This document shows positions 2 to 20,377 of a stretch of DNA of 64,000 nucleotides, piece by piece. Location of the stretch: IMG/VR virus record IMGVR_UViG_3300042889_001503, positions 62,001 to 126,000 of that record. One strand, written 5' to 3'. Positions within the stretch are counted from its first letter, which is position 1; every line of letters starts with the position of its first letter. The notes under the pieces are model-generated. The model saw only the letters and a list, made by a program, of their open reading frames with translations, made no database searches and was not told the origin of the DNA. The translations under genes and the position numbers were made by a program.

Positions 2-3000
2 AGATGTTTTACCGGTTACACTAGAGTTACCTCAGAGGTCACAGGTTTAACAACTTGTGCTTGTTGTAATAATTCTGTTGTTAATAGTAGATGTATCTAT
101 GTTTATCCACCTAGACCAACTAAAGCGGATTGTGATGGTTGTATTAGTTGTGGTTGGGAATATAAAATACACGATTGTCCATTACCTACACCAACACCAA
201 CTCCAACACCAACTCCGATACCGGTCCCTTCAAATTGCGAACCAATCACGGCTTGTACTGCGGGATGTACTTGTGTACAATGTATATCTTGTAACGATTG
301 TCAAACTTGTGATAATTGTAATGTAACTCCGGGTTCAGTTGAGAATACTTGTGAGAGTGACCCATTGTTTGATTCAATGTCAAACGCATTATCATTTAAA
401 TTATGTGGTGACCCACATAACCCTCAAATTGGTGTTAGATTACTAAGATTTACCGGAGGATGTGAGACTAGTGGAAGTTGTTCAACAACAGGAATTACTT
501 ACACAACAGGATACACTATAGACAATTATTGTACACCACCAATTTATCCTTATTGTTTAGAAGTTAATCCAAGTTATTTAGATATGGAACATTGGTTTCA
601 TATTACAGCCGTTTGGGAGAGATATACTTGGTTAGACACTTGTGACTTATGGTATAGAGGGGGTATTGGAGATATCACGGAGAAAAAATATTTAGATGGA
701 TTAGCAAATAACTCAAAAGAGTTAATCACTGTTCCATATACACAAACTTGTGGGACTGACCCACAACAAATTGATTTGGTTAATCTAAATGAGAAATGGT
801 TGATTGATAAGGATTTTAGAAAAGGAAGATTAAAAATATACATTAATGGAAGAATATTCCACACATTTCAAGATATTGAGGAAATTATCCCAAGAGCATT
901 ATCCACAGATAAGGAAAAACAAGTCGGTGTTCCTTATAATATTTCGTGGGGTGGTGGAACCCAAGGTTTAAGAGAAAATTTAACTTTCTCGGCAATTACC
1001 GGAACAACTTATATCCAAGACCCGGAATGTTTACCAACTAACGATTTGTTAGGAACAACGTTTAGTGGATTAACGACTGATATATTATTAGAACAAAATT
1101 TTGGTGGAACATTTGATGGGGGTATATCTCAATTCAGAATGTATGTGGAGCCATTATCATCAGACGAAGTTAAACATAATTTTAAATTATTAAAAGATAC
1201 GTTTGATATGTTTAATCCTGATTGCCCTGATTGTGGTGAAAATTTCTGTCCGGTTGATGATTTTACATATGTGATTAATGGTCCTACTCCAACACCTACC
1301 AATACTCAAACACCAACACCCACATCAGAACCATTAAATTTAACCCTTTTCGTGGAATATACACCGGGTTCTATAATTGCGTATTATAGATTAGTATTGA
1401 ACCGTTCATATAGTGAAGAAATAAATGTTACTTTTGAAAATGTTCTAAATGTCTATAGTGGGACTCCGATTACAATATTTACTGGTGTTACGGTTAGTTT
1501 AGGGGATTTATCAGGACAAACTATTGTTACAATAAATGAAGATTATAACAACTATAATGGGGAACCATTTTTTAGTCAATTATCGGGAACTCCGAATGGA
1601 AGTACGTGGGAAATAATTTTAATCCAACCAACACCAACCCCAACACCAACTAATACCGTAACTCCAACTAATACCATAACACCAACTAATACCGTAACTC
1701 CAACTAATACCATAACACCAACACAAACCTTAACTCCGACTAATACCATAACACCAACACAAACCTTAACTCCGACTAATACTCCAACTGAAACACCAAC
1801 TCAAACCTTAACTGAAACTCCGACAAACACTCCAACTCCGACTATTACAGAAACTCCAACTAATACTCCAACAAATACCTTAACACCAACTCCGACCCCT
1901 ACACCAATTATACCATTAGTTTTAATACAAGGTTTATTTTCTTATGAAGGTTGCATACCTTGTGAGACTTCTTGTTTATTAGGTTTAATTACTTTATATA
2001 CAGAACAATCGTGTGTTGATTTTATTACTGTTGGATGTCACTTGTATCTTGATTCAGAAGGAACAGAAAATGCTGAGAAAGGATATTACAATAGATGGGA
2101 TGGAACACCAGGACTATTGTATATCGATAAGGAAGGGTTAGTATTAAATATAGATGTATGCCCACAACCTACACCAACACCTACTTTGACATCAACCTCA
2201 ACACCTACTCCAACACCACCATCTTTAGTTACAATTAATCTATCTTCGTGGGGGCTTGGTACTCCTTGTACACCATCTGTTCTTCCTACACCTATTACTT
2301 CCTACACCTCTGCAGCATGTTTAGCTGCAATAACAGTAGGATGTATAATATATACAAATAATAGAGGAGCACTCCTTTCTCAAGGATATTATAACTTTTA
2401 TGATGGTTATTTTTATGTAAACAATATAGGAGAAGTGGTAAATATTAATGTTTGCCCACAACCAAACCCAACACCAACAATGACTCAAACACCAACTGAA
2501 ACTCCAACAAATACACCTACTCAAACACCAACTAACACAGAAACACCTACGCAAACTCCGACACAAACCCCAACACCAACTAATACAGAAACACCAACAA
2601 ATACACCAACTGAAACCCCAACAAATACACCAACACCAACAACAACATTAACTGAAACACCGACTCAAACACCTACACCAACACAAACAGTAACCCCATC
2701 ATCAACACCACCACCACCATTTGTTTCTGTTTGGAGAACAACATCCGCTTCAGAATCAATAATATTACCTTATTCATCTTTAGGAACATATTCAGGAACT
2801 ATAGATTGGGGGGACGGAAGTACCTCAGCAAACACAAATGCAAATAAAACTCACACATATACAACACCGGGATACTATACTGTGACTATATATGGTTTAA
2901 TTAATAAATTTAGTTTCGGTAATTACTTTGGAAGTTATGGTAATATTTACGAAATATTACAGTGGGGACCTTATTTTAATTTAGGTGTTGGAACCACTAG

Positions 3001-5134
3001 TCAATTTAGTAATTGTAGTAATTTGTCATTAACAAATGTTAGTGATACATTAAATTTAAGTGGTATAACAAGTTTACAAGGAATGTTTACTAGTTGTAAC
3101 AATTTATCAACAATAAATAATGTAAATAATTGGAATGTTTCTGGTATTACAAGTATGTATGGTATGTTTTTTAACACTCAATTTAATAGTGATATTAGTG
3201 GTTGGAACGTTTCAAATGTAACAACTATGGAGCGAATGTTTTCAAGTTCTAATGGACCATTTAATCAACCAATCGCTAATTGGGATATTTCAAAAGTTCA
3301 AAGTATGCGTTCAATGTTTCAAAATAGTCAGTTTAACCAACCTATTGGAAATTGGAACGTTTCAGGTGTAACCGATATGCAAAATATGTTTGATGGTAGT
3401 CAATTTAACCAACCATTATCCGGATGGAATATTTCAAATGTTAATTTACAACAAATATTTAAAGGGTCACAATTTAATCAGCCAATAGGAAATTGGGACA
3501 TTTCAAAAGTTATTAGTGTACAGGGTATGTTTGATAGTGGTACATTTAACCAACCAATTGAGAATTGGAATATGTCCGGTATAACTAGTATTAGTGCGAT
3601 GTTTAATGGTAACACCTCATTTAATCAATCATTATCGGGATGGAATGTTTCAAATGTAACAAGTATGTTTTTTACGTTTGGTAATTCAATATTTAACCAA
3701 CCTATTGGAAATTGGAATGTATCAAAGGTTACTAATATGGTAGCAGCGTTTCAAGATTCACAATTTAATCAACCATTGTCAGGATGGAATGTTTCAAAAG
3801 TTGTTTCCACTCAACAAATGTTTTATGGGTCACAATTTAATCAACCTATAAATAATTGGAATGTTTCGGGTGTTACTAATATGAGAGCTATGTTTCAAAA
3901 TTCACAATTTAACCAAGATATCTCGAGTTGGAATGTTTCAAAAGTTGATAATATGTACCAAATGTTTAGTGATTCACAATTTAACCAAGATATTGGAAAT
4001 TGGAATATTTCAGGTGTAACCGATTTTACTAATTTTATGTTAGGAAAAACACCAGCAACATTCTCGACAACAAATTTAGATTCTATTTATAATGGATGGT
4101 CCACAAAAAACCCAAAAACAGGAGTAACAATTAATTTTGGTTCAGCCAATTATACATCAACAGGTTCCTCAGGAAAAGCTATCCTTACAGGTTCAACCGG
4201 AAGTGGAGGTTATGCTTGGACAATAACAGATGGTGGTATATTTATTGTTCCAACACCAACACCAACTAATACGGAAACCCCTACACCAACACCAACTAAT
4301 ACGGAAACCCCTACACCAACACCAACATTAACTGAAACACCGACTCAAACACCAACAACAACATTAACCAACACACCTACACCAACACAAACACCTACAC
4401 CAACATCGGCTTCAACACCGACTGTTTTTTCAGCATTTACTGATGATTATAATAGAGCCACATTATCTCCGGGTGGAACACCATCTTTAGTTTATACAAA
4501 CACAAATACTGGTACGGGTAATGCAACAATATCGGCATCAACTTATGTAAATATTGCAAACGGTGGTACTGCGGGACAGTCATATACCACAGTACCTCTT
4601 TCAGGATTTGGTTCACCATTTAACCCAACATTGTCGAGTAATAGTGGAACACTTGAATGGTCGTTTAATTTAAGAACAAATAGAAACTCCATATTCTCAG
4701 GATTTCTTGCGTCGTCATACGGAGGAGCAGTTGTATTAGCAAGTACAACAACTAACCTTCAAAATGCCGGTAACGGATACGCATTAGTTTATGGTAGTGG
4801 GGGAACAAGAAACTGGAGATTTGTTAGATATACCGGTGGTTTAGCGGGAACACAAACCACCATAATTACGGGAGGTGTTTTCGCGGCAAACACTAATTAT
4901 GTTAGTGCGAGAATTGTATACGCTCCGGCAACAAATACTTGGACATATTATTTTAGAGATGATGGTGCTGTTGCTTGGGGTGACCCAACAACTGTAAGTA
5001 CGTTAATTGGTAGTGTGGTTGATAGTACGTATACCTCATCATTAATGAGTTCATTTGGTGTGTTCTTTAACTATTCAACAGGGGCAAATCAAAATTTACA
5101 ATTTGATAATTTAAGGGTATTAATAACAGGTTAA
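2..5134 (+). CDS. Very large modular surface/virion protein, 5'-truncated: Cys-rich region, LamG/concanavalin-like domain, Pro/Thr linkers, PKD + BspA(DUF285) repeats, C-terminal lectin-like domain
   Basis: Frame is open from base 2 (RCFTGYTRVTSEVTGLTTCACC...) into the tracked ORF 365..5134, so the true start lies upstream. LamG-like motifs HWFHITAVW, LKIYING, FDGGISQFRMY..PLS..EV. Repeats FNQPIGNWNVS.VT.M..MF. PKD motif TIDWGDG..THTY.TPG.Y. Confidence 0.8.
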   Translation, partial: RCFTGYTRVTSEVTGLTTCACCNNSVVNSRCIYVYPPRPTKADCDGCISCGWEYKIHDCPLPTPTPTPTPTPIPVPSNCEPITACTAGCTCVQCISCNDCQTCDNCNVTPGSVENTCESDPLFDSMSNALSFKLCGDPHNPQIGVRLLRFTGGCETSGSCSTTGITYTTGYTIDNYCTPPIYPYCLEVNPSYLDMEHWFHITAVWERYTWLDTCDLWYRGGIGDITEKKYLDGLANNSKELITVPYTQTCGTDPQQIDLVNLNEKWLIDKDFRKGRLKIYINGRIFHTFQDIEEIIPRALSTDKEKQVGVPYNISWGGGTQGLRENLTFSAITGTTYIQDPECLPTNDLLGTTFSGLTTDILLEQNFGGTFDGGISQFRMYVEPLSSDEVKHNFKLLKDTFDMFNPDCPDCGENFCPVDDFTYVINGPTPTPTNTQTPTPTSEPLNLTLFVEYTPGSIIAYYRLVLNRSYSEEINVTFENVLNVYSGTPITIFTGVTVSLGDLSGQTIVTINEDYNNYNGEPFFSQLSGTPNGSTWEIILIQPTPTPTPTNTVTPTNTITPTNTVTPTNTITPTQTLTPTNTITPTQTLTPTNTPTETPTQTLTETPTNTPTPTITETPTNTPTNTLTPTPTPTPIIPLVLIQGLFSYEGCIPCETSCLLGLITLYTEQSCVDFITVGCHLYLDSEGTENAEKGYYNRWDGTPGLLYIDKEGLVLNIDVCPQPTPTPTLTSTSTPTPTPPSLVTINLSSWGLGTPCTPSVLPTPITSYTSAACLAAITVGCIIYTNNRGALLSQGYYNFYDGYFYVNNIGEVVNINVCPQPNPTPTMTQTPTETPTNTPTQTPTNTETPTQTPTQTPTPTNTETPTNTPTETPTNTPTPTTTLTETPTQTPTPTQTVTPSSTPPPPFVSVWRTTSASESIILPYSSLGTYSGTIDWGDGSTSANTNANKTHTYTTPGYYTVTIYGLINKFSFGNYFGSYGNIYEILQWGPYFNLGVGTTSQFSNCSNLSLTNVSDTLNLSGITSLQGMFTSCNNLSTINNVNNWNVSGITSMYGMFFNTQFNSDISGWNVSNVTTMERMFSSSNGPFNQPIANWDISKVQSMRSMFQNSQFNQPIGNWNVSGVTDMQNMFDGSQFNQPLSGWNISNVNLQQIFKGSQFNQPIGNWDISKVISVQGMFDSGTFNQPIENWNMSGITSISAMFNGNTSFNQSLSGWNVSNVTSMFFTFGNSIFNQPIGNWNVSKVTNMVAAFQDSQFNQPLSGWNVSKVVSTQQMFYGSQFNQPINNWNVSGVTNMRAMFQNSQFNQDISSWNVSKVDNMYQMFSDSQFNQDIGNWNISGVTDFTNFMLGKTPATFSTTNLDSIYNGWSTKNPKTGVTINFGSANYTSTGSSGKAILTGSTGSGGYAWTITDGGIFIVPTPTPTNTETPTPTPTNTETPTPTPTLTETPTQTPTTTLTNTPTPTQTPTPTSASTPTVFSAFTDDYNRATLSPGGTPSLVYTNTNTGTGNATISASTYVNIANGGTAGQSYTTVPLSGFGSPFNPTLSSNSGTLEWSFNLRTNRNSIFSGFLASSYGGAVVLASTTTNLQNAGNGYALVYGSGGTRNWRFVRYTGGLAGTQTTIITGGVFAANTNYVSARIVYAPATNTWTYYFRDDGAVAWGDPTTVSTLIGSVVDSTYTSSLMSSFGVFFNYSTGANQNLQFDNLRVLITG
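1625..1905 (+). repeat. Pro/Thr low-complexity tandem repeats (TPTNT/TPTQT/TPTET units)
   Basis: Near-tandem acaccaactaatacc-type units. Similar tracts at about 185-215, 1283-1322, 2460-2720 and 4250-4420. Confidence 0.9.
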
Positions 5135-5148
5135 CAAAAAAATAAAAT

Positions 5149-6216
5149 ATGTCAAATACAATAACGATACAAAGTATAAATTATAGTGGGGAGGTTGCAA
5201 ATATTTTGTTTAAACCTAACGGTGTTAATGTGGTTATAAATTTAGGTAATCAAATATTACCTTATGTGTTTAATCCGTCATTATTAACACCACCTCGTAA
5301 TGTATATGGTGTTTACACTATATTAGTTGAGGGGGCGGATTGTCCTGTTATTATGAATGTTCCGGTTCCTACTCCTACACCAACACCAACACCGACTGTT
5401 ACAAACACTCAAACACCGACAGCTACACCAACACTAACCCCAACTCCTTCTTTCAACCCTTGTAAAGTTCCTACACAAACACCAACAACCACCACTACAC
5501 CAACTACCACACCGACCCCAACAATAACACCTACGGAGACTTGTACGAACCCATGTGGATGTTACGCCCCAATACCACCAACACCAACACAAACACCAAC
5601 CAATACACACACTCCGACAAATACACCAACACCAACATTAACACCAACTCCGGTATATTATGCTAAGTTATTTATTGAACCTGTAAGTGGGTCTGAAAGT
5701 ATTGGTCAATGGATGTATGATAGTGGTTCTAATTTCTTTGGTTTTACAAACAATACACAACCAACACAAGACCAAACACAATTTAATATTGATATGAACA
5801 AATATGTTGATTTCAGTGGTTGGACTAGTGGTGAGTTCCCACCAATAATTAGTCAAACGGTTCCTCAAATTTCAGGAGGGCTCGATAGTTTTGGTAACCC
5901 AATAGTTGCCTATAATTTCTTAACAACCGAAGTGTTGCAAGGTTATGTTGGTGGTTTAGGGTGGTATATTTGGATTATCCCAATTTCATTAACTAATAAT
6001 GGAAGACAAACAATTATTGATTTTAATGAAAGTAATGATTCTAATTTATTAACAAATATATATACTGAAGATGCAATTAACACATATACATTTACCTACA
6101 CCGGAACAACAATTCCACAAACAACATACCGAGTTTATACAACATATCCTAACATAATATTTAACATTACCGATAACAATAATATTTATTTTAGAGGTAA
6201 TACCATAACACAATAA
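5149..6216 (+). CDS. Putative virion protein: ~70-aa N-terminal module, Pro/Thr linker, C-terminal beta-rich domain
   Basis: 355-aa ORF with long PT tracts, in the same operon as the adhesin-like genes. Confidence 0.6.
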   Translation: MSNTITIQSINYSGEVANILFKPNGVNVVINLGNQILPYVFNPSLLTPPRNVYGVYTILVEGADCPVIMNVPVPTPTPTPTPTVTNTQTPTATPTLTPTPSFNPCKVPTQTPTTTTTPTTTPTPTITPTETCTNPCGCYAPIPPTPTQTPTNTHTPTNTPTPTLTPTPVYYAKLFIEPVSGSESIGQWMYDSGSNFFGFTNNTQPTQDQTQFNIDMNKYVDFSGWTSGEFPPIISQTVPQISGGLDSFGNPIVAYNFLTTEVLQGYVGGLGWYIWIIPISLTNNGRQTIIDFNESNDSNLLTNIYTEDAINTYTFTYTGTTIPQTTYRVYTTYPNIIFNITDNNNIYFRGNTITQ

Positions 6217-6217
6217 T

Positions 6218-9200
6218 ATGAGTAATTTTTTAAATAACATACCAGTTTCACCTATAAAATCATTAGGTAATCCTTCTGTTCGTAATAACGCAACATTTGG
6301 AACAAATTTCAGTATCCTTCAAACAGGGGGGTATATGGAAGTTTACAATTTAACCGATTTAGATTACATAATCCCTAACGGTTATCAAGGTTTAGTTGAA
6401 TATTCCGGTAATACGATTCCGGTTCAGTTACAAATTGGGACGGGTCAAATTTTTTCACCTAATGTGTTAACATTAAATTCTGACAACATTTCTTCAGGTA
6501 GAAGAAAATTAGGGATGTTAGTTTATGTTTATGAAACCAAAAAAATATATCAATACAATATTGATAATTATGATACGTTATGGAACAACGCTACCGGAGC
6601 AACAGGTCCGGGGGGTTCTACAGTAGTTATATCAAATTTTGGAACAACGGTTAAAAATAACTCACCTGAAGGTATTGTGTTAATTAATGCTTGGACGGCA
6701 TCAACAATATCAGGTATTAATGGTTATGACGATACAAACGCTTCTTGGAGAGTTCTTCAAACATTTACCGGAGGAACAGTAACGGGAGCAACAATATTTA
6801 CAGATGGTTTAACTGCAAACACAATATCGGCAACAACATATCAAAATTTGCCTGCAACACCTTTCTTACCATTATCAGGAGGAACAGTGACCGGAGCAAC
6901 AATATTTACAGATGGTTTAACTGCAAACACAATTTCCGCAACAACATATCAAAATTTGCCTGCAACACCTTTCTTACCATTATCAGGAGGAACAGTAACG
7001 GGAGCAACAATATTTACAGATGGTTTAACTGCAAACACAATTTCCGCAACAACATATCAAAATTTGCCTGCAACACCTTTCTTACCATTATCAGGAGGAA
7101 CAGTAACGGGAGCAACAATATTTACAGATGGTTTAACCGCAAACACAATTTCGGCAACAACATATTATAATTTACCAAAAGACGTTTTTATTACCGGAGG
7201 AACATATTTCCAAGGCAACACTATTTTTACAAATAGTACAGGTGGTACTTTTAATATTTTTGGACCATCTAATTATGACCCGGGAGTTATTAGTGGTAAC
7301 ACAGGTTGGTCAAGTAATAATGACGGGTCAATTAATTTACCGCAGATAACGGTTGCATTATACGACAACCCTAATTTTTTTGAGCCTCTTAAATTTTATT
7401 CAATTTCAAGCGGAACCACAGGTGTCGGGTCACTTCCGGCATTAATAAATAACGACACAAATTATATTATAATTGAATATAATAATGGGGTTCCTAGATA
7501 TAATGTTTTAGATAATGAGGGGACTGTTGATTTTAGTAGTATTCTATTATATATGATTGTCTATCGAACAAATAATTTTATTCACGTTTTAGAGTTTGGT
7601 GATGAGGGTGCGGGTTTACCAAGTAAATTAAATGAACGTATTGTATATACAGATAGATTCGCGAGAGAAAGTGGTTGTTCGTTAGGTTTAAGTGGAAGTA
7701 CAGGTATTGTAACCTTATCTTCAGGTGTTGTTTGGAACGCCACTAATCGTCAAATAGTTAATGACACAACTTCATTAGGACTTTTTTTTAGAAATTTCCA
7801 TTCAGGCGGTACGTGGGTTTATACCACAACAGCAAATACAATTAATAATCTTTACTATGATAATGGTACTGATTTAGTATCAGCAACCGCAGGAAAATAT
7901 TTAGTTAATTGGTATTTTAGAGGACAAGAATTAAATGACCACTTATATGAGGTGGTTAGTGATGGACAATTCGATAATATATTATTAGCGGACGCTTCAA
8001 GTGAACCAAATTTACCTGAACTAATTACATCACACACATTTTTGGTTGGTAGGATTATTATTGAGGTAAGTGCGACAACAGGTATTACACAGTCGGCATT
8101 TTCATCAGTATTTCAACCAAGTGGTGCTCCCGGAGTTCACAATGATTTAACGAACATACAAGGAGGTCTTCCTAACCAATATTATCATTTAGATTCAAAC
8201 AAATATAATAATTTAGCATTAACAAATATTGATAATAATTTTAGTGCGGGACAAACATTTGCATCAGGGTTAACTGCAACTACAATATCCGCAACAACAT
8301 ACCAAAATTTACCACCAACACCTTTCTTACCTTTATCAGGTGGAACGGTAACAGGTCAAGTAATACTAAAAAATAACTCGAGCCCATTAATAATCACAAC
8401 CGATAATTATAGTCCGGGGATATCAGGTAATATACTATTTTACGGGGATATCACGGGGTCAACTAATGGGAAGTCAATTAGTTCTAGGTCAAACGGGGGT
8501 GGAAATCCAGGGAATTTAATCCTTCAAGAATTAGGGAATGGTAATGTTGGTGTTAATACAAATGTTGTCAATCCAATATTAAATTTTAATTTAGATGTAA
8601 ACGGTACTTTTGGTGCGACATCAGTATCAGCAACAACTTATTTTAATTTACCGGCAACACCTTTCTTACCATTATCAGGAGGAACAGTGACAGGTGCAAC
8701 AAACTTTACAGGAGGTTTAACCGCCACTACTATTTCAGCAACAACATACCAAAATTTACCACCAACACCTTTCTTACCATTATCAGGAGGAACAGTAACG
8801 GGAGCAACAATATTTACAGGAGGTTTAACGGCAAATACAATATCCGCAACAACAATAAGTGGGGGAACTGTAGTTCTTAACTCAACCAATCTACCGTCAA
8901 CACCGATTGCTGTTTCAGCATTTACTGATGATTATAATAGAGTTACTCTATCACCCGGAGGTTCACCATCGTTAACCTACACAAATACAAATACAGGTGC
9001 TGGTAATGCAACAATAACGGCATCAACTTATTTAAATATTGCAAACGGAAATCCTGCGGGTCAGTCATACACTACGGTACCATTATCCGGTTTTAACTCA
9101 CCATTTAATCCAACATTATCATTAAATACTGTAAATGTTGAATGGTCATTTAATCTAAGAACAAATAGAAACACCATATTTCCAGGATTCTCAGCCGGTA

Positions 9201-10240: not shown

Positions 10241-10241
10241 T

Positions 10242-10742
10242 ATGGAATATACAAATTGGAATTTTTTGACGATTGTTTTATATCAAAATATTTTAGAAAT
10301 AAATAGTCTTTTAATAATGAGAAGGGATATTAATACAATGGATAGTATTTCAGTTAAAAATCTATTGAATGACGTTTCTAATTCTATTGTGTTAGACGCA
10401 ATAAAAACACAAAATGGGATTTCCGATTGTAAGAATTGGGATGCAATCGAAATACGTTTATCGTTAAATGATGAAGTATATAAAAATTTTAAATCAACAA
10501 GAAGTGAATTTGACAACAATCAATTTGATTTAGGTTATTTTTTATATGACGCATTTGTTGCTTTATCATTAGACGATATTGATAATCAACAAATTTATAT
10601 ACCATCAGACACTCTTTATTCGGAAGAGTTAATTATTAACCAAAATGAAGAACCTATTTTTTCCGGTATAACAACTACATTTAAAACCGTTGATGGATTA
10701 ACTGTTGTAATTAAAAATGGGTTAGTAATTTCAATTGGTTAA
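10242..10742 (+). CDS. Hypothetical protein, possibly fibre-associated
   Basis: 166-aa ORF directly after the fibre gene, ending in the beta-rich segment FKTVDGLTVVIKNGLVISI. Confidence 0.45.
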   Translation: MEYTNWNFLTIVLYQNILEINSLLIMRRDINTMDSISVKNLLNDVSNSIVLDAIKTQNGISDCKNWDAIEIRLSLNDEVYKNFKSTRSEFDNNQFDLGYFLYDAFVALSLDDIDNQQIYIPSDTLYSEELIINQNEEPIFSGITTTFKTVDGLTVVIKNGLVISIG

Positions 10743-10773
10743 TTAGGACTATTTATTAAATAATGAATAGTTT

Positions 10774-13416
10774 ATGCAAGTAATTGAAATCACAAGTTTA
10801 TCCGGACATTCCCCATATAACATATCAATATGTGATATAACAAGAACGTATTGTTATGTTGTTGCGACAGCTGTCTCATCAGTCCCGTTAATTCTAAACA
10901 TACCAACAGAATTATCAGGTTCTCAAGAAGTCTTAGTGATAGTCACAGATAACATTGGTTGTGAAGAAATTCAATATCATTTTTGTGGTGAACCTGCTCC
11001 TAGTCAAACACCAACGACAACACCCACTCCCACACCAACAAATTCCGTTTGTAATTGTATCTCAATTGATAACCCTTTAGGGGTAACATTAAATTTTGGG
11101 TATACTCAATGTGACGGGACATTAATCTATGGTGAGATTTACTCGGCAACCACATTATATGTTTGTGGTCAATTTCCGTATGGTGATAGTGGATTAATAA
11201 TTCAGGTTTCATCTAATATTTGTGTTGGGGATGTTTGCCCCGGACCAACACCTACACCAACCACCACTCCGACACCCACTCCAACATTACCACCGATAGT
11301 TGGTTATTTTGAGGATAGTTGTGATTCATCAAACCAATTTACCTTATCAAACATACCAATATCATTTAGTCCTCTGTCAGGAGCGTATTATATTGAAAGT
11401 AGTGGTTTCATTGGATGTGCCACTTATGTTGTTAGTTCATCTACAAACAATTTCTATTCATTTATTGCGATGGGTTCTCAACCGAGTATTTACCATTGTC
11501 AGAAAGCCAATTTTATCTATCCGTGTCCAACATCAACACCCACACCAACACCTACACCATCAATAACACCATCGGTAACTCCGACTCATACACCTACACC
11601 AACTCCGACTCACACTCCCACACCAACAACACCTGTTAAGTATGTGTTGTTCCAAGTTCAATCTTGTTGTGCTAAAAAGATTATAAAATATATTATGTTA
11701 CCGTCTAACTTTTTACCGGGAACTGCGGTTGTCAATTCATTTGGTGAGTGTTTAGAAATTATTAGTGTATCTAAAATTGTGACTTGGGTAACCGATTTTT
11801 GGGACCACGGAACAACATACATTTTTTGTGAGGTATGTGTTAAATATCAAACTTGTAATCCTGTTATACCACCATCCTTTATCTCTGTTTGGAGAACAAC
11901 AACTATAAACGAATCAATTACATTACCATATGAAACTTCGGGGTTTTATTATGGAACAATTGATTGGGGTGATGGGGAAACCTCTAATAATATTTACGAT
12001 AATAGAACACACACATATGTAACTCCGGGTGATTATATAATAACAATAACAGGGACATTAATTGGGTGGTCGTTTGGTGTTAACCCTATTAGTAGAAATA
12101 AAATTAGAGAAGTTCTACAGTGGGGTTGTTTACGTTTGGGTAATAGTGGTTCGTATTTTTCTAATTGTAATAATTTATCATTATCAAATGTTACCGATGT
12201 TTTAGATTTAACGGGAACAAATAATTTATCTTATACGTTTGAGAATTGTACTAATTTAACAACAGTCCCTTTTATAAATTCTTGGAACACATCAAACGTA
12301 ACAAATATGCAAGGTATGTTTTTTGAGTGTCATAATTTTAATGACGACATATCAGGTTGGGATGTTAGTAATGTTACTGATATGGGAGCAATGTTTGATA
12401 ACACTTATTTATTTAATCAGCCAATTGGTGTTTGGGATGTATCAAATGTTCAATCTATAAGTTATATGTTCTTACAAAATACCGTTTTTAACCAAAATTT
12501 AAGTTCTTGGAATGTTGGTAGTGTTACTAATATGAAAGGAACTTTTAATGGTTGCACATCATTTAATAACGGTGGTTCACCAATGATTAGTGGTTGGACA
12601 ACATATAATGTTACTGATATGGGTGATATGTTCCCTTTAACACCATTTAACCAACCAATTAATTCTTGGGATGTTAGTAGTGTTACTAAAATGGATTATA
12701 TGTTTTATCAATCAACATCATTTAACCAACCATTATCGGGATGGAATGTAAGTAATGTTACAGATATGAATTATATGTTTAGTTTATCCCCATTTAATCA
12801 ATATATTAATTCTTGGGATGTATCAAATGTTACAACTATGGAAGGTATGTTCTTTTTTAACACAATATTCAACCAAAACCTTAATTCTTGGGATGTAAGT
12901 TCAGTAACTAATATGGATTATATGTTTTGGTTTGATTACGCATTTGATGGTAATATAACTAGTTGGGACACTTCTAATGTTACAACAATGAGATTAATGT
13001 TTGCTACGTGTAGTATTTTTAATCAAAATATTAGTGGTTGGAACGTTGGTAATGTAACAAATATGCAACAGATGTTTAACGGAGCAACACAATTCAATCA
13101 ACCTATTGGTTCTTGGAACGTTAGTAATGTGACTAATATGTCAAATATGTTTGGTTCAGTAGGATTTAATCAAAATATTGGTTCTTGGAACGTTACCGGC
13201 GTAACAAACTTTAATGGATTTATGAATGGTAAAACATTTAGTGATTACTCAACAACAAATCTTGACGCAATTTATAATGGATGGAGTTCTTTACCAACAT
13301 TAACCTCTGGAATTAACATTAATTTTGGAACAATTAAATATACTGCCGGTAGTTCAGCCGGTAGAGCAATTCTAACCGGAACGTATGGTTGGACAATTAT
13401 TGATGGTGGAATATAA
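10774..13416 (+). CDS. BspA/DUF285-repeat surface protein with Cys-rich modules, Pro/Thr linkers and a PKD-like domain
   Basis: 880 aa. More than 10 repeats of FNQ.I..W(D/N)VS.VT.M..MF, plus GTIDWGDG and PT tracts. Confidence 0.8.
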   Translation: MQVIEITSLSGHSPYNISICDITRTYCYVVATAVSSVPLILNIPTELSGSQEVLVIVTDNIGCEEIQYHFCGEPAPSQTPTTTPTPTPTNSVCNCISIDNPLGVTLNFGYTQCDGTLIYGEIYSATTLYVCGQFPYGDSGLIIQVSSNICVGDVCPGPTPTPTTTPTPTPTLPPIVGYFEDSCDSSNQFTLSNIPISFSPLSGAYYIESSGFIGCATYVVSSSTNNFYSFIAMGSQPSIYHCQKANFIYPCPTSTPTPTPTPSITPSVTPTHTPTPTPTHTPTPTTPVKYVLFQVQSCCAKKIIKYIMLPSNFLPGTAVVNSFGECLEIISVSKIVTWVTDFWDHGTTYIFCEVCVKYQTCNPVIPPSFISVWRTTTINESITLPYETSGFYYGTIDWGDGETSNNIYDNRTHTYVTPGDYIITITGTLIGWSFGVNPISRNKIREVLQWGCLRLGNSGSYFSNCNNLSLSNVTDVLDLTGTNNLSYTFENCTNLTTVPFINSWNTSNVTNMQGMFFECHNFNDDISGWDVSNVTDMGAMFDNTYLFNQPIGVWDVSNVQSISYMFLQNTVFNQNLSSWNVGSVTNMKGTFNGCTSFNNGGSPMISGWTTYNVTDMGDMFPLTPFNQPINSWDVSSVTKMDYMFYQSTSFNQPLSGWNVSNVTDMNYMFSLSPFNQYINSWDVSNVTTMEGMFFFNTIFNQNLNSWDVSSVTNMDYMFWFDYAFDGNITSWDTSNVTTMRLMFATCSIFNQNISGWNVGNVTNMQQMFNGATQFNQPIGSWNVSNVTNMSNMFGSVGFNQNIGSWNVTGVTNFNGFMNGKTFSDYSTTNLDAIYNGWSSLPTLTSGININFGTIKYTAGSSAGRAILTGTYGWTIIDGGI

Positions 13417-13469
13417 TTTCTATTTATCTTTTTATAAAAAATATTATTTTTACAATAAAAAGATATTAA

Positions 13470-14717
13470 ATGAAGATATTTGTCCAAATTGCGTCCTATC
13501 GTGACCCCCAACTTATCCCAACAATTAAATCAATGTTGGAGAATGCAAAGAAACCTAAAAATTTAGTAATCGGTATTTGTCGTCAATATCATCCGGAAGA
13601 TGGTTTTGATAATTTATCAGAATTCAAAGGTGATAAACGTTTTAGAGTTATTGATGTTCTATACACCGAATCCAAAGGGGTTTGTTGGGCAAGAAACCAA
13701 GTTCAACAACTATATAAAGGTGAAGAATATACCTTACAAATCGATTCTCATATGAGATTTGAAAAAGATTGGGACGACACCCTAATCAAAATGGTTAAAC
13801 AACTTCAAAAGAAAGGATTTAAGAAACCTTTACTAACAGGTTATGTTTCTTCATTCGACCCGGACAATGACCCGGCAAGTAGAGTTAAAGAACCTTGGAG
13901 AATGGCTTTTGATAGATTTATACCGGAAGGTGCCGTCTTCTTTTTACCTGAAACAATTCCGGGGTGGGAAAATCTTAAAGAACCCGTTACCTCAAGATTT
14001 TACTCCGCCCATATGGCATTTACATTGGGACAATTTAGTGTCGAGGTTCAACACGACCCTGAATTCTATTTCCACGGAGAAGAAATCTCAATCGCTGTTA
14101 GAGCATTTACACACGGATACGATTTATTTCACCCACACAAAACTGTTATTTGGCACGAATATACTCGTAAGGGTAGAACCAAACAATGGGATGATGATAA
14201 AGAGTGGGGTAAGAAAAATGAATTATCTCATAAAAAGAATCGTCAACTATTTGGTATGGACGGTGAAGACGTTACAATGGACTTTAGTTTTTACGGGTTC
14301 GGAACTGAAAGAACTTTAAAAGATTATGAAATTTATTCAGGTCTTAAATTTTCAAATAGAGCTGTTCAACAATATACTTTAGATAAAAATTACGCACCTA
14401 ATCCTCAAATATTTGAAACTGAGGAAGAATGGTTGGCAAGTTACGCTAGTATCTTTAAACATTGTATCGACATTGGATTTTCTCAAGTTCCTGAAAAAGA
14501 TTACGAATTTTGGGTTGTTGCTTTCCACGATGAAAAAGATGAAACACTTTTTAGAAAAGATGCTGATATCAATGAGATTAATAATATGATGAGAGACCCT
14601 GATGGGTATTGTAAAGTTTGGAGAGATTTCCAAACTGTTCATAAACCAAAATACTGGGTTGTTTGGCCGTTTAGTAAGTCAAAAGGTTGGTGTGAAAGAA
14701 TAACAGGTAATTTGTAA
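13470..14717 (+). CDS. GT60-like (Pfam GlcNAc family) polypeptide N-acetylglucosaminyltransferase with an extra C-terminal domain
   Basis: IFVQIASYRDPQL, ESKGVCWAR..VQQLYKGEEY.LQIDSHMRF..DWD, FHGEEI..AVRAFTHGYDLFHP and WHEY match the Gnt1/Skp1-GlcNAc-transferase family signature. Confidence 0.85.
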   Translation: MKIFVQIASYRDPQLIPTIKSMLENAKKPKNLVIGICRQYHPEDGFDNLSEFKGDKRFRVIDVLYTESKGVCWARNQVQQLYKGEEYTLQIDSHMRFEKDWDDTLIKMVKQLQKKGFKKPLLTGYVSSFDPDNDPASRVKEPWRMAFDRFIPEGAVFFLPETIPGWENLKEPVTSRFYSAHMAFTLGQFSVEVQHDPEFYFHGEEISIAVRAFTHGYDLFHPHKTVIWHEYTRKGRTKQWDDDKEWGKKNELSHKKNRQLFGMDGEDVTMDFSFYGFGTERTLKDYEIYSGLKFSNRAVQQYTLDKNYAPNPQIFETEEEWLASYASIFKHCIDIGFSQVPEKDYEFWVVAFHDEKDETLFRKDADINEINNMMRDPDGYCKVWRDFQTVHKPKYWVVWPFSKSKGWCERITGNL

Positions 14718-14721
14718 AAAT

Positions 14722-15429
14722 ATGGAATATGCGATAGCAACATTTTGTTATGGTGATAGATATTATGCCCAAACAAATAGAATGATAGAATCATTTAAAG
14801 AATTTGAAGATAAACCAAATATTTTCATAGTTACAGATAATCCGGAATCAATTACTAAAGAAGATTATGTATTTGTTTCACATATTAAGGAATATAATGA
14901 AAAATATGTGACATATAATACGAATTATTATGATTTTGATTTTTCAGTTAAAAGATTCTCAGTAAAATTTGCGTTAGATAGTGGATTTACTAAAGTAATT
15001 TTAACAGATACGGATGTTATACCAAACAAATCATTATTCACAAAAAAAAATGTGTTAGAGTGTTTTATACCTAATAGTGTTGCCGGTCAAGTAACCTATC
15101 TTTTTGAAAAAGAGGTTGAGACAAATAGTATGTTAGGAAGACGATACTTACATTATGAAAATAAATTTGACGTTCAATATAATAAAGTGGATATGTGGAT
15201 GCCGGAAGACTGCATTCAATTTTTAGATATTGATAAAGATAAATTTTATTCATTTTTAAAAACTTGGGATGAATGTATTGAGATTAAATATGTTGACAAT
15301 TTATATAATATACCTGCGGGTAATATAGATGAAATGTGTTTCTCAGCATTACATAACGGTGTTGACTTAAAAAACAATTCTAGCAAACACATAAACTTAT
15401 TAATCCCCAATCACGACAAATGGTATTAA
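14722..15429 (+). CDS. Putative GT-A fold glycosyltransferase
   Basis: IATFCYG..Y, IFIVTD, VKRF, VILTDTD (DxD) and late GNIDE motif. Lies within the GT operon. Confidence 0.6.
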   Translation: MEYAIATFCYGDRYYAQTNRMIESFKEFEDKPNIFIVTDNPESITKEDYVFVSHIKEYNEKYVTYNTNYYDFDFSVKRFSVKFALDSGFTKVILTDTDVIPNKSLFTKKNVLECFIPNSVAGQVTYLFEKEVETNSMLGRRYLHYENKFDVQYNKVDMWMPEDCIQFLDIDKDKFYSFLKTWDECIEIKYVDNLYNIPAGNIDEMCFSALHNGVDLKNNSSKHINLLIPNHDKWY

Positions 15430-16265
15430 AAATTATTACATCAGTTTATGAATTAAACTATGAAGATTCCAGAGGTGGTATGGTATATAAATCATATCCA
15501 TTATTAACCCAAACATTACGTAGTATAATTTTTGAAGGTTTTGAATATGTTATTTACACTAATCAATACACTTACGACAAATATCATTTAGGTGAACAAT
15601 TTAACCAACCAAATGTAACCATAAAGTTTCACGAATTAAATTCTGAAAATTACCTAAACAACATAAACCCAATTAGATTAGTTAAATTTGCCGAAGGGGA
15701 AATTTACGATAGAATTTATTGTGTTAAAAATTATGTAGAAGTTATTTTTAATAAGTTACAATTTTTACTCGATGAGTGTGAAGATAATAAAAATGTTGTG
15801 TGGATTGATTCCGGACTTTTTGGAACTAGTTGTCACGATAGATGGAGAGATTACATTAATGTTTTTGCCCATTCAGAATTATTTTTAAATAAAATAAATG
15901 AAAAAATATCTGAGAATGGTTTTATTTGTTTAAGAGGAGAATCAATTCAGGTTAATTACGAATTAAAAGCAGTTCTTGTTAATATGTTTAACACAGACTT
16001 TAAGTTAGTTCCCGGAGGTATGTTTGGAGGGACAAGTGAGTCTATTCAAAAAGTTTTATCTAATTACTTATCGATTTTTGAAACATATTACACAACAACA
16101 GGTAAATTAATTAGTGAACAAGAGGTTTTATCTATATTAACTCACACAAATGACGTTAAATTTTTTAATTTTGGTGATTGGTTAGATTTACAAAGAGGGA
16201 TATTGGACCTTATGGATTTATTGGATGTCGACAAATATAAAATTGATGAGAAATATGATGTCTAA
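15420..16265 (+). CDS. Divergent HtrL/YibB (WlaTC)-like glycosyltransferase
   Basis: VVWIDSG, GGMFGG and SEQEVL motifs parallel FWIDAG, AGFFGG and TEESLF in the 16821 ORF. Confidence 0.6.
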   Translation: MVLKIITSVYELNYEDSRGGMVYKSYPLLTQTLRSIIFEGFEYVIYTNQYTYDKYHLGEQFNQPNVTIKFHELNSENYLNNINPIRLVKFAEGEIYDRIYCVKNYVEVIFNKLQFLLDECEDNKNVVWIDSGLFGTSCHDRWRDYINVFAHSELFLNKINEKISENGFICLRGESIQVNYELKAVLVNMFNTDFKLVPGGMFGGTSESIQKVLSNYLSIFETYYTTTGKLISEQEVLSILTHTNDVKFFNFGDWLDLQRGILDLMDLLDVDKYKIDEKYDV

Positions 16266-16824
16266 CTATTCTTTTAACATTGTTTGCACAACTATTGGAA
16301 GAGAATCATTACCAAGATTGATTGATAGTTTTAAAAATCAGTTAACCCAAAACGATTCTTTTACCATAATATCCGATACAAATCACGAGTTTGTTCAAAA
16401 TGTTTTATCTAATTATGATGTTAATTTTAAATTAAATCACATTATAAATGATGGGGATAGATTAGGTAAGTTTGGACACCCTTTATTAAACAAACACATT
16501 AATAACCTTGACGGTGATTTTATTATGTTTGCGGACGACGATGATTATTATGTTGATGATGCCTTTGAGTATATAAGGGAAGTCGTTACAGAAAAAAAAC
16601 TATACATTTTTAAACATAAATGGGGAGGAACAATTAATTGGACGACAAAAGAAGTAACACTAGGGAATATTGGTAAATGTATGGGTGTCATTCCTAATAC
16701 TAAAAATTTACCAATGTTTCAAGAAGACGTATTCGGGGATGGGTTATTTTACGAAGACTTATCCAAAATTATGGAATATGAATTTGTTGATAAAATAATA
16801 TATAAAATTAGAGATACAATATGA
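16255..16824 (+). CDS. GT2-like glycosyltransferase
   Basis: IVCTTIGRESLPRLIDS, IISD and FIMFADDDDYY. ATG at 16255/16258 overlaps the upstream stop and is a likelier start than 16225. Confidence 0.7.
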   Translation: MMSNYSFNIVCTTIGRESLPRLIDSFKNQLTQNDSFTIISDTNHEFVQNVLSNYDVNFKLNHIINDGDRLGKFGHPLLNKHINNLDGDFIMFADDDDYYVDDAFEYIREVVTEKKLYIFKHKWGGTINWTTKEVTLGNIGKCMGVIPNTKNLPMFQEDVFGDGLFYEDLSKIMEYEFVDKIIYKIRDTI

Positions 16825-18494
16825 GTAAAGTAACATTAGTGACAGGATTATGGGATATAGGTAGAGGAGACCTTCAAGAGGGTTGGTCTCGTTCATTCCA
16901 ACATTATTTAGATAAATTTCAACAACTATTACAAGTTGATGTGAATATGATTATTTTTGGTGACGAAGAGTTAGAGAAATTTGTGTCAAACAATAGACGA
17001 AGTGAAAACACACAATTTGTTCGTAGAAGTTTGTCTTGGTTTAAAGACAACGATTTTTTTGATAAAATACAAAATATAAGAACAAATCCGGATTGGTATA
17101 ATCAAGTCGGATGGTTAACCGATTCAACTCAAGCTAAATTAGAGATGTATAACCCGTTGGTTATGTCAAAAATTTATCTCCTACACGATGCTAAAATTTT
17201 AGATAGGTTTAATTCAGAATATATGTTTTGGATTGACGCTGGGTTAACAAATACAATTCACCCGGGATATTTTACACACGATAAGGTTTTAGATAAATTA
17301 CCTCAATTAGTTAAAAATTTTCATTTTGTTTGTTTCCCTTATGAAACTAATTCTGAAATCCACGGATTTAAATATCCTGAATTATGTGAATTAGCCGGAG
17401 AACCAGTTAAAATGGTTGCTCGAGCAGGTTTCTTCGGAGGAAGAAAAGATGTTATATCAGATATTAACGGTATCTATTACGGGTTAATGAATGATACATT
17501 ATCACAAGGGTTAATGGGAACTGAAGAATCGTTATTTACAATTATGACATACAAATACCCTGAGTTGATTAGTTATTCAGAAATAGAAGATAATGGATTA
17601 ATGGGTAAATTTTTTGAGGACTTAAAAAATAACACGACTCAAGTTAAAGAAAGTGTTTTACCAATTAAACCGAATAGTTTAGACACATCCAAAGTTGGAT
17701 TGTATGTTATAGCATTTAACTCACCTAAACAATTTGAGGTATTAATCCAATCTATGTTAGATTATGATTCTGACTTTATTGATAAACCAAAAAAATTCTT
17801 ATTAGATAACTCAACCGATTTATCAACAACACCAAGATATCTTGAACTATGTGAACAATATGGTTTTGAACATATTAAAAAAGACAACATTGGTATTGTC
17901 GGGGGGAGAGTGTTTGTTGCTGAACATTTTGATGAAACTGATTTAGATTGTTATTGGTGGTTTGAAGACGATATGGCTTTTTATCCAAAAAAAGGTGAGG
18001 TATGTAGAAATGGGTTCCCTCGTTTTGTTGATAAATTATATCAAAAATCAGTAGAGATTGTTAAAAAAGAAAATTTTGATTTTCTTAAATTAAATTTTAG
18101 TGAATTTTTTGGTGATAATAGTGTTCAATGGAGTTGGTATAATGTCCCTCAAGATTTTAGACAATCTCATTGGCCGAATAACCCTAAATTACCGGTTCAA
18201 GGACTAGACCCTAATTCACCTAAAACACAATTTAAGGAGATAAGGACATATAAAGGGTTATCATATGCGACAGGGGAAGTTTATTTATGTAATTGGCCGA
18301 TAATATTAACAAGAGAAGGTAACTATAAGTGTTATTTAGAAACAAAATGGGCTCACCCATTTGAACAGACGTTAATGTCTTATTGTTATCAAGAAACTGT
18401 TAAAGGAAAAATTAATCCGGGATTATTGTTATTAACACCAACGGAACACGATAGATTTGAACATTATGACGGTTCATTAAGAAAAGAAAGTTAA
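16821..18494 (+). CDS. Two-domain glycosyltransferase: HtrL/YibB-like N-terminal domain plus GT-A C-terminal domain
   Basis: TLVTGLWDIGR, RSFQHYL..F..LL, MSK..LL and FWIDAG in the first domain. LYVIAFNSP, LLDNS and WWFEDD in the second. Confidence 0.75.
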   Translation: MSKVTLVTGLWDIGRGDLQEGWSRSFQHYLDKFQQLLQVDVNMIIFGDEELEKFVSNNRRSENTQFVRRSLSWFKDNDFFDKIQNIRTNPDWYNQVGWLTDSTQAKLEMYNPLVMSKIYLLHDAKILDRFNSEYMFWIDAGLTNTIHPGYFTHDKVLDKLPQLVKNFHFVCFPYETNSEIHGFKYPELCELAGEPVKMVARAGFFGGRKDVISDINGIYYGLMNDTLSQGLMGTEESLFTIMTYKYPELISYSEIEDNGLMGKFFEDLKNNTTQVKESVLPIKPNSLDTSKVGLYVIAFNSPKQFEVLIQSMLDYDSDFIDKPKKFLLDNSTDLSTTPRYLELCEQYGFEHIKKDNIGIVGGRVFVAEHFDETDLDCYWWFEDDMAFYPKKGEVCRNGFPRFVDKLYQKSVEIVKKENFDFLKLNFSEFFGDNSVQWSWYNVPQDFRQSHWPNNPKLPVQGLDPNSPKTQFKEIRTYKGLSYATGEVYLCNWPIILTREGNYKCYLETKWAHPFEQTLMSYCYQETVKGKINPGLLLLTPTEHDRFEHYDGSLRKES

Positions 18495-18530: not shown

Positions 18531-19217
18531 ATGGAATTTTTTATAAAGAAAAACGCAACCTTACCTCTTCTTAAACTTCAAGTAGTAAAAGATGGTAGAA
18601 GTGATTACAATAATTTTATGGAATTATTGGAATCCTCAACCATATTCTTTTCTATGGTTAATTCTGAGACAGGTATTCCAAAAATAACTTCAAGACCAGC
18701 GGGGTTTGTTGAAAAAATATTTGACGACCCCAATGCAGAACCTGAATATTATATTTACTATCAATTTACCAAACAAGACACGAGTGTTGAGGGTAGAAAT
18801 GAAGGACAATTTTTAATAAAGACATCTGACGGTAATATAATATTACCAATTAGGGAAAAACTAAACATATATATTCAAGAGTCATTTATTGCTGACGATT
18901 TAGAATATGATACTTGCTACACATCAGTTTATCCTTGTTGTGTATCACATTCTGTTATACCACAACCACCATCACTTGTATATTTTAATTATGAATTAAT
19001 TAAAGACAAAGATTTTATTTATAAAACAATCCCTAATAATAATTTAGATGACGATGTTATACCAAATAACGATATTATAACGAGTAATATTCCTGACAAT
19101 AATTTAGGTGATGACATCATACCAAATAACAATATTATAACAAATAGTATTCCTGATAATAATTTAGGTGATGATATAATCCCAAATAATGATATTATAT
19201 CAAACATTTTACTTTAA
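18531..19217 (+). CDS. Putative structural protein (BppU-like N-terminal beta domain) with an Asn/Asp/Ile repeat tail
   Basis: FFIKKNATLPLLKLQV...YYQF...DT..EG..EGQF.I...G.IILP pattern followed by three 20-aa repeats. Confidence 0.5.
   Translation: MEFFIKKNATLPLLKLQVVKDGRSDYNNFMELLESSTIFFSMVNSETGIPKITSRPAGFVEKIFDDPNAEPEYYIYYQFTKQDTSVEGRNEGQFLIKTSDGNIILPIREKLNIYIQESFIADDLEYDTCYTSVYPCCVSHSVIPQPPSLVYFNYELIKDKDFIYKTIPNNNLDDDVIPNNDIITSNIPDNNLGDDIIPNNNIITNSIPDNNLGDDIIPNNDIISNILL
19029..19208 (+). repeat. 60-bp tandem repeat x3 (IPDNNLGDDIIPNNNIITSN-like)
   Basis: Units start at 19029, 19089 and 19149, each with an internal 30-bp periodicity (IPxNN). Confidence 0.9.
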
Positions 19218-20350: not shown

Positions 20351-20377
20351 AAAAAGACCTTCGGGTCTTTTTTTTTT
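20351..20377 (+). terminator. Rho-independent terminator
   Basis: aaaagacc-TTCG-ggtctttt followed by a T run. Confidence 0.9.

Follow-up and report, generated by a model that had tools for sequence, protein, structure and literature searches.

A GT60 glycosyltransferase homologue beside threonine-proline-rich genes of a freshwater jumbo phage: a candidate mucin-type O-glycosylation system

Results

A glycosyltransferase block lies directly 3' of Thr/Pro-rich genes

We analyzed a 64-kb stretch of the IMG/VR virus record IMGVR_UViG_3300042889_001503 (positions 62,001 to 126,000; hereafter the window), in which a tightly packed block of five glycosyltransferase (GT)-like genes sits directly 3' of three open reading frames (ORFs) rich in threonine-proline (PT) tracts. 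The window shows sequence traits of a mucin-type system: Thr/Pro-rich repeat domains as candidate acceptors, an initiating-type polypeptide glycosyltransferase of family GT60, and candidate elongating glycosyltransferases. The features on which we rely, together with bacterial loci discussed below, are collected in Table 1. Pfam scans of the window took ORFs of at least 100 aa.

Table 1. Features of the window and PT-bearing genes near bacterial GT60 loci
Position	Strand	Feature	Remarks
2..5134	+	Large modular protein; candidate acceptor	Seven Thr/Pro linkers (19-89 aa) between modules; DUF285 (BspA-like leucine-rich repeat) array
5149..6216	+	355-aa protein; candidate acceptor	Two Thr/Pro linkers (67, 33 aa)
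6218..10240	+	Fibre-like protein, 1340 aa	Thr/Ser-rich; 36-aa repeats; shares a module with the 2..5134 gene
10242..10742	+	Small ORF, 166 aa	Kept alongside the fibre-like gene by close relatives
10774..13416	+	880-aa protein; candidate acceptor	Three Thr/Pro linkers (21-43 aa), then DUF285 array; directly 5' of GT60
13470..14717	+	GT60/PF11397 polypeptide alpha-GlcNAc-transferase homologue	Pfam; proposed initiator; soluble by sequence
14722..15429	+	Retaining-type GT-A (GT8/GT6-like fold)	Predicted structure; invariant D96-x-D98
15420..16265	+	HtrL/YibB-like domain protein	WIDxGL and GGxFGG motifs; homologue of XacN1 ORF332
16225..16824	+	Small GT2-like enzyme, weak match	DDDD motif
16821..18494	+	Two-domain protein, N-half HtrL_YibB-like	Downstream edge of variable cassette; XacN1 ORF330 homologue, 42% identity
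18531..19217	+	Probable appendage protein	Kept N-terminal domain of ~140 aa, variable C-terminus
19274..20347	+	LCIB/LCIC-type beta-carbonic-anhydrase-like protein	PF18599, E 4.6e-27; last gene before hairpin
20351..20372		Bidirectional terminator-like hairpin	First strong one on the + strand past position 5000
35174-35662		gp19-type tube
L123:11479-12240, L129:11491-12126, L124:11519-12037, L136:6792-7454, L151:6748-7473, L112:4147-5061		Bacterial twin-arginine PT proteins
L126:12270-15131, L145:15052-17535, L159:15078-17573, L106:13903-16461	-	Bacterial VgrG proteins

The first gene of the block belongs to GT60

The sequence of the first gene clearly places its product in GT60/PF11397. It matches the Pfam GlcNAc profile at 238.1 bits (cutoff 21; E 2.5e-70; profile reach 350/352) and PHROG 24687, a glycosyltransferase family, at E 1.6e-168. 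An alignment with 37 homologues (36-51% identity to the window enzyme) shows no variation at D92-S-H94 or H229. What we take to mark GT27 and GT60 is a distal His together with a DxH metal-binding motif in a GT-A fold, and D92, H94 and H229 would fill these roles here. All 27 best Foldseek matches of its AlphaFold model (pLDDT 95.8) in the PDB are GT27 mucin-type polypeptide N-acetylgalactosaminyltransferases (ppGalNAc-Ts; E 3.7e-11 to 2.5e-9), and its matches in BFVD are "Glycosyltransferase, GlcNAc" proteins of uncultured tailed phages, Megaviridae and Pandoravirus. An earlier note on this DNA had assigned the gene to GT60 and named a profile search as the check; profile, invariant motif and ppGalNAc-T-like model all bear the assignment out. 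The sole PDB match by sequence, T7 RNA polymerase, was dismissed as chance.

Past the Pfam domain the enzyme carries a beta-rich C-terminal extension of ~110 aa (residues ~300-415); GT60 enzymes are described as lacking the C-terminal ricin-like lectin domain typical of GT27 (PMC8724618). Characterized GT60 enzymes transfer alpha-N-acetylglucosamine (alpha-GlcNAc) onto Thr in the Thr-rich stretches of mucin-like proteins, an example from Trypanosoma cruzi being the KPPTTTTTTTTKPP peptide, and the primer is then lengthened in a strain-specific manner (PMC3769586; PMC8724618). The GT60-like family forms 4694 clusters at 50% identity (E <= 1e-3), and IMG/VR holds 436 relatives of the window enzyme. 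Four giant proteins of 1600-2460 aa (P0122, P0123, P0124, P0128) each contain up to four GT60-like stretches.

Thr/Pro tracts are confined to three genes upstream of the block

The (T-P)n tracts of the window form 12 linkers of 19-89 aa, all upstream of the GT block and all within the three candidate acceptor ORFs. As the earlier note had described, the tracts are long: 162, 54 and 48 residues fall in strict tracts in gene order, against a maximum of 6-10 residues in 1000 shuffles per protein. Among the other ORFs of 100 aa or more in the 64 kb, none passes the PT criterion; the PT-rich ORFs of the window all fall in the 13.5 kb upstream of GT60. Imperfect tandem repeats of 6-48 bp encode the tracts.

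The first gene is 5'-truncated, its frame running open through the edge of the window. The last 232 residues of its product are 81% identical to residues 900-1131 of the fibre-like protein, a shared module that points to exchange between the two genes. The fibre-like protein is, as had been stated, rich in Thr (15.1%) and Ser (8.7%); PT tracts are absent from it. Two tandem arrays of 108-bp units lie in its gene, one at 6770-7173 (3.7 copies, 96% matching) and one at 8625-8854 (2.1 copies); the 36-aa units that they encode are near-identical and look recently duplicated. No family match was found for the 355-aa protein, Pfam up to E 10 included, and none in Pfam up to E 10 for the small ORF that follows the fibre-like gene.

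Four further genes encode candidate elongating enzymes

The five genes of the block are spaced by +4, -10, -41 and -4 bp. By sequence prediction, the GT and PT proteins all lack signal peptides and transmembrane segments, which fits modification in the cytoplasm before assembly; nor is there a segment of transmembrane-strength hydrophobicity in any block protein such as a membrane GT of the O-antigen, capsule or Gtr type would have. The count of five GT-like genes made in the earlier note stands; of its six GT-like domains five are supported, the sixth being the C-half of the two-domain protein, for which only motifs speak.

The second gene has no Pfam match up to E 10, and its homologues in a set of 5.8 billion proteins are an orphan sequence family with neither Pfam annotation nor informative names. 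Because these annotations say so little, its fold was predicted: the model (pLDDT 93.9) resembles XXYLT1, ABO transferases, BoGT6a, LARGE1 and UGGT. The third gene product, likewise unmatched in Pfam up to E 10, aligns in hhalign with the HtrL_YibB-like N-domain of the two-domain protein (98.2%, E 3.8e-14), which itself matches Pfam HtrL_YibB at 63.7 bits. The GT2 assignment of the fourth gene is marginal (27.3 bits against a Pfam cutoff of 23.3; SpsA at E 0.0098). The C-half of the two-domain protein (17691-18494) has invariant NS.D and EDD motifs; it has no Pfam match up to E 10 and no PDB sequence match, and the profile of the whole protein retrieved nothing useful from the PDB. Kinship of this protein with the GT2-like enzyme was considered, and hhalign found none. 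An NCBIfam scan added only weak PglI and YibB matches to the Pfam results.

Two bookends enclose a hypervariable cassette in the same lineage

We compared the window with 80 IMG/VR loci whose GT60 is 77-100% identical to its own. The GT60 gene and the two-domain gene are conserved bookends, and the cassette between them ranges from 0.8 to 9.1 kb and comprises 86 protein clusters at 35% identity. Pfam scans of 85 representatives reveal glycosyltransferases (GT25, GT10, GT11, GT2, GT34, PLOD-type, GT7C and RXYLT1-like), modifying enzymes (FkbM and other methyltransferases, a carbamoyltransferase, GNAT enzymes) and a group of sugar-nucleotide and other functions (UDP-GlcNAc 2-epimerase, DegT aminotransferase, nucleotidyltransferase, HAD). 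Lipid-carrier, flippase, polymerase and DNA-modification families are missing from the 25 most frequent of the 34 Pfam families found. One cassette protein matches PF12919, the GT44-type catalytic domain of large clostridial toxins and a protein-glycosylating GT fold (E 1.7e-8).

The ORF directly 5' of GT60 carries PT tracts of at least 12 residues in 37 of 47 clusters formed at 90% identity, its sequence being otherwise highly variable, and several of the remaining 10 have a shorter PT-bearing ORF in between. A search anchored on the family-B DNA polymerase (PolB), which lies 2 kb downstream of the block, recovered one relative, L228, in which GT60, the terminal GT, the PT ORFs and the 18531 homologue are all missing. 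Its PolB is 88% identical and its downstream synteny is kept, and the 9.4 kb before PolB is a different upstream region (L228:1-9442). L228 alone lacks all four together, and this search is largely uninformative, since extra PT-rich genes push GT60 past the 10-kb flank.

The pairing recurs in distant phages and in bacteria

The earlier note had proposed co-occurrence of GT60 with PT-repeat genes across related genomes as a check; the pairing proves to be well above chance, and it extends beyond the lineage of the window to a marine clade, a crAss-like contig and bacteria. GT60 homologues occur in only 4 of 50,697 deposited phage genomes, namely XacN1, Xoo-sp13 and the Stenotrophomonas jumbo phages CM1 and RAS14. 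XacN1 and Xoo-sp13 share the gene order GT60, carbamoyltransferase, ORF332 (HtrL-like), ORF331 and ORF330 (two-domain), and this block lies near a 3313-aa PT-linker protein that comes after baseplate wedge genes. XacN1 virions yield at least two Schiff-positive bands, and the phage's own glycosyltransferases were suggested as their makers (PMC5852040).

In the marine clade, whose GT60 is 47-49% identical to that of the window, a PT-rich ORF of ~2000 aa ends ~500 bp upstream of GT60, and a double GT32-like enzyme followed by a second PT-rich ORF lies downstream; in its representative, L166, GT60 is the sole BLAST match to the window. The same holds for the crAss-like contig L171, in which GT60 lies between two PT-bearing ORFs. 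Pfam places the muzzle C-terminal domain PF25729 in the ORF directly 3' of GT60 and PF25731 in the ORF a few kilobases 5' (L171:1705-2745, L171:9643-11055), and by these matches a PT-bearing neighbour of GT60 in L171 is a tail-protein homologue.

The bacterial set comprises 80 GT60 loci from many phyla, with an ORF counted as PT-rich if at least 20 residues lie in PT tracts. Eleven such ORFs fall within 1.5 kb of GT60, eight at 1.5-5 kb and none at 5-10 kb; the corresponding binomial p values of about 1e-4 and 1e-5 are optimistic, because some loci are related to each other. Small proteins with a twin-arginine (Tat) signal, composed of PT repeats nearly throughout, adjoin GT60 or lie within 5 kb of it in Acidimicrobiaceae, Alphaproteobacteria, Caulobacterales, Congregibacter/Luminiphilus and a deltaproteobacterial metagenome-assembled genome (MAG). 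This arrangement suggests that they may be glycosylated in the cytoplasm before Tat export. VgrG spikes of the type VI secretion system (T6SS) whose C-termini extend into long (TP)n tails are encoded at a distance of 1-4 kb from GT60 homologues in Ralstonia, Achromobacter, Paraburkholderia and Paraherbaspirillum. All four proteins come from Burkholderiales; they are 46-62% identical to one another and match VgrG in the PDB at E 2e-123. In Gemmatimonadaceae the gene directly 5' of GT60 encodes a small N-domain, PqqD-like by eye, with a PT/ST-rich tail (L094:8438-9232, L097:9212-9952).

Flanking genes and the identity of the phage

Downstream of the block, the 18531..19217 product is probably another appendage protein. 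It has no Pfam match up to E 10, and its C-terminus contains a 60-bp (20-aa) repeat at 19038-19204 rich in Asn, Asp and Ile; where the window has this repeat, the C-terminal modules of its relatives are often joined by long PT linkers. LCIB-like domains, of the kind encoded by the next gene, stand 5' of GT60 in some relatives, fused to PT tracts of up to 318 residues (L043:5299-7125, L043:7106-8461); the domain may serve as a module of fibres and not as an enzyme. Every gene between 2 and 20347 is on the same strand, closely packed with its neighbours, and the first strong terminator is at 20351; one transcription unit may therefore cover the fibre genes, the GT genes, the 18531 gene and the LCIB-like gene.

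The window has a GC content of ~33%, tight gene packing nearly throughout and most of its genes on the + strand; no tRNA gene was found in it. Pfam identifies structural genes (tail sheath, gp19-type tube, T4 baseplate proteins, gp25, gp6/J-like wedge proteins) and genes of replication and metabolism (gp32, DnaB-like helicase, 5'-3' exonuclease, both ribonucleotide reductase subunits, SNF2 helicase and PolB). By this gene content the window belongs to a T4-superfamily myophage, and the label of phage given to it before holds. It is a freshwater phage, and identical and related IMG/VR contigs of up to 272-322 kb make it a jumbo phage; judged by the sheath, its closest isolates are only ~30% identical. 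Copies of GT60 57-84% identical occur in low-GC contigs binned with Bacteroidota/Saprospiraceae MAGs, a binning that hints at Bacteroidota as the host phylum. The sheath protein (30541-34134) is unusually long at 1197 aa, with the sheath-domain match confined to its last ~280 residues, and two giant ORFs, 38493-43406 (1637 aa) and 43725-50648 (2307 aa), are without Pfam or PHROG match.

Discussion

On balance, we think it likely that the GT60 block glycosylates the PT linkers of the phage's own appendages. What we have established is the enzyme family, its fold, catalytic motifs and solubility, the gene order, the hypervariability of the cassette and the recurring adjacency of GT60 and PT tracts; from these we infer the acceptor, the sugar, the location in the virion and the biological role. 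In the mechanism that we propose, the soluble GT60 enzyme would act in the host cytoplasm, adding an N-acetylhexosamine to Thr of the (T-P)n linkers; the sugar would most likely be alpha-GlcNAc and the donor host UDP-GlcNAc. Nucleotide-sugar synthesis genes were indeed not found in the window by Pfam scans, as had been noted before. The acceptors would be the three modular appendage proteins encoded upstream and, in relatives, also homologues of the 18531..19217 product. The primer would be extended by the GT8/GT6-like GT-A enzyme, the two HtrL-like domains, the GT2-like enzyme and the unassigned domain, an order of action that we infer, and in related phages swapped-in glycosyltransferases and O-methyl-, carbamoyl- and acetyltransferases would do the extending. 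As a result the linkers would bear a strain-specific coat of glycans, for which stiffening of stalks or linkers, protease resistance, adhesion, and shielding or masking are roles on which we can only speculate.

Several points weigh against this explanation. Glycans on proteins of this phage are predicted from sequence, and the PT-rich proteins are candidate rather than proven virion components: PHROG places DUF285/PT proteins only in function-unknown families. The identities of the XacN1 glycoproteins were not reported (PMC5852040). HtrL_YibB is a family of unknown function, and the sixth GT-like domain is a guess from motifs. Close phage relatives are non-independent samples, some 60 of the 80 bacterial GT60 loci have no PT-rich ORF within 10 kb, and PT linkers are common in proteins without a nearby GT60. 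Adjacency could, moreover, reflect a shared home in the hypervariable fibre region.

The alternative that survives best, though we hold it to be unlikely, keeps the glycosylation of virion proteins and moves it (mainly) away from the PT linkers, to Ser/Thr-rich fibre domains, the enlarged sheath or the capsid (whose gene lies outside the window), as in mycobacteriophages and chloroviruses. The fibre-like protein, at 24% Thr+Ser without PT tracts, could be a substrate, the XacN1 glycoprotein bands are of unreported identity, and known viral systems modify capsid and tail-tube proteins (Freeman 2023, as cited in PMC12619734). Against it, characterized GT60 enzymes work on Thr-rich mucin-like stretches (PMC3769586), and it is the PT tract, not a fibre, sheath or capsid domain, that turns up again and again beside GT60 in bacteria and in phages without relation to this one.

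Somewhat less likely still is that the enzymes remodel host lipopolysaccharide (LPS), capsule, exopolysaccharide or host proteins during infection, whether to block superinfection, to free progeny from debris or to take over the host, with a cassette that varies with the host glycan and hence lies beside receptor-binding genes. The block encodes no initiating phosphoglycosyltransferase, flippase, polymerase or membrane protein that we could find; its initiator comes from a polypeptide-modifying family with ppGalNAc-Ts as nearest structures, and PT adjacency is significant in bacteria too. These observations must be set against the presence of HtrL/YibB genes among the LPS-core genes of Escherichia coli (Pfam description), the GT25, GT2 and Caps_synth-type families of the cassettes, the PHROG category of the GT60 family ("moron/AMG/host takeover") and the lack of PT neighbours at most bacterial GT60 loci.

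We regard coincidental linkage, with PT linkers as flexible spacers and the glycosyltransferases as unrelated cargo of a recombination-prone fibre region, as improbable. Fibre genes and cassette are both hypervariable and mosaic, and PT linkers without GT60 are, as noted, widespread; the pairing nonetheless recurs in phages of other lineages whose only match to the window is GT60, and in bacterial chromosomal loci whose partners are Tat-signal PT-repeat proteins and VgrG spikes with (TP)n tails.

Hypermodification of DNA, in which glycans on hydroxymethylated pyrimidines evade restriction, we consider very improbable: phage GT-A and GT-B enzymes do make diverse DNA glycans, often near DNA polymerase or replication genes (bioRxiv 10.1101/2023.12.21.572611), and PolB is close by, but the genes of these pathways are found together with those for a ThyS homologue, or for 5mYOX and C5-MT (bioRxiv 10.1101/2023.12.21.572611), none of which appears in the window Pfam scans or the 25 most frequent cassette families, both modelled enzymes are ppGalNAc-T-like and GT8/GT6-like rather than beta-GT- or JGT-like, and the DNA of XacN1, which has a homologous operon, was mapped by digestion with BssHII, NaeI and SpeI, which disfavours a bulky cytosine modification.

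The proposed glycosylation of PT linkers has its closest chemical precedent in the protist GT60 enzymes, Gnt2/modB of Dictyostelium and TcOGNT-2 of T. cruzi, together with the cytoplasmic Gnt1 that acts on hydroxyproline of Skp1. Shared are the Pfam family, the GT-A fold with DxH, the kinship with GT27, Thr-rich and Pro-containing mucin-like acceptors (candidates in our case) and, on our proposal, a GlcNAc primer extended by further glycosyltransferases and strain-dependent glycans. The phage enzyme differs in being the gene product of a tailed phage, soluble in the cytoplasm of a bacterium, where there is no Golgi, with a predicted activity only, an extra C-terminal beta-rich domain and appendage proteins as putative acceptors; a prolyl hydroxylase was not among the genes seen in the window.

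Serine-rich repeat (SRR) adhesins of Gram-positive bacteria are primed in the cytoplasm by O-GlcNAc transfer to Ser/Thr repeats through GtfA/GtfB and then extended by variable glycosyltransferases encoded beside the substrate. The likeness is in logic only, a low-complexity repeat of a surface fibre being primed and then extended by neighbouring enzymes; the SRR system differs in its GT4 (GT-B) initiator pair, in its SRR rather than PT repeats, in SecA2/Y2 export and in being cellular rather than viral. Neither a GT4 GtfA/GtfB pair nor accessory Sec genes appear in the window Pfam scans or the listed cassette families. Among giant viruses, the chlorovirus PBCV-1 (capsid protein Vp54) and Mimivirus (fibrils) encode glycosylation of virion surface proteins without recourse to the endoplasmic reticulum or Golgi, with methylated or otherwise decorated sugars made by clusters of glycosyltransferase and sugar-modifying genes. 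PBCV-1 is mentioned in the XacN1 paper (PMC5852040). Such clusters are common ground with the window phage, and Megaviridae and Pandoravirus also have GT60-like proteins; giant viruses differ in their eukaryotic hosts, in the atypical N-linkage of PBCV-1 and in having no PT-linker acceptor logic.

To our knowledge, self-glycosylation of phage virions has been demonstrated experimentally in mycobacteriophages only. There, too, the phage encodes glycosyltransferases that act in the cytoplasm of the host on its own structural proteins, and the glycans sit on capsid and tail-tube C-termini and are made by other GT families (Freeman 2023, cited in PMC12619734). The window phage is set apart by its GT60 initiator, by the candidate internal PT-linker acceptors of its fibre-like proteins and by its hypervariable cassette. 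XacN1, Xoo-sp13, CM1 and RAS14 have a GT60 46-49% identical to that of the window, and the first two keep the ORF332 and ORF330 homologues in order near PolB; they differ in high GC, Xanthomonadaceae hosts, a carbamoyltransferase in place of the GT-A and GT2 enzymes, and short PT tracts. The "Moraphage" paper reports core glycosyltransferases in another aquatic jumbo lineage (PMC12619734). Mycobacteriophage virion glycosylation, protist GT60 chemistry and automatically annotated GT60-like phage genes were already known. In the literature that we searched, which does not extend to most subscription journals, we found no description of GT60/PF11397 in phages or of PT-linker glycosylation by phages, and no paper that connects PT-rich phage proteins with GT60 or gives an account of the hypervariable cassette.

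More tentatively, and with less confidence than we place in the proposal for this phage, GT60 acting on (T-P)n repeats might be a widespread cytoplasmic "mucin-type" O-glycosylation of prokaryotes, shared by phages and bacteria and perhaps the source of the protist and animal system. Jumbo myophages, the marine clade and crAss-like phages would then give their fibres a strain-specific glycocalyx by means of O-antigen-like cassettes, and bacteria would target Tat-exported PT-repeat proteins and the (TP)n tails of T6SS VgrG.

An initiator of the eukaryotic mucin type thus lies in an abundant lineage of aquatic jumbo phages, between its likely acceptors and a cassette that equals an O-antigen locus in variability. 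If our explanation is true, PT linkers, usually seen as passive spacers, would be sites of modification, strain-specific fibre glycans could influence how the phage adsorbs, resists proteases and is recognized by hosts and grazers, and they would bear on the reading of proteomics and cryo-electron microscopy of such phages. A prokaryote-like cytoplasmic enzyme has long been proposed as the origin of mucin-type O-glycosylation, and this idea would gain a concrete prokaryotic counterpart.

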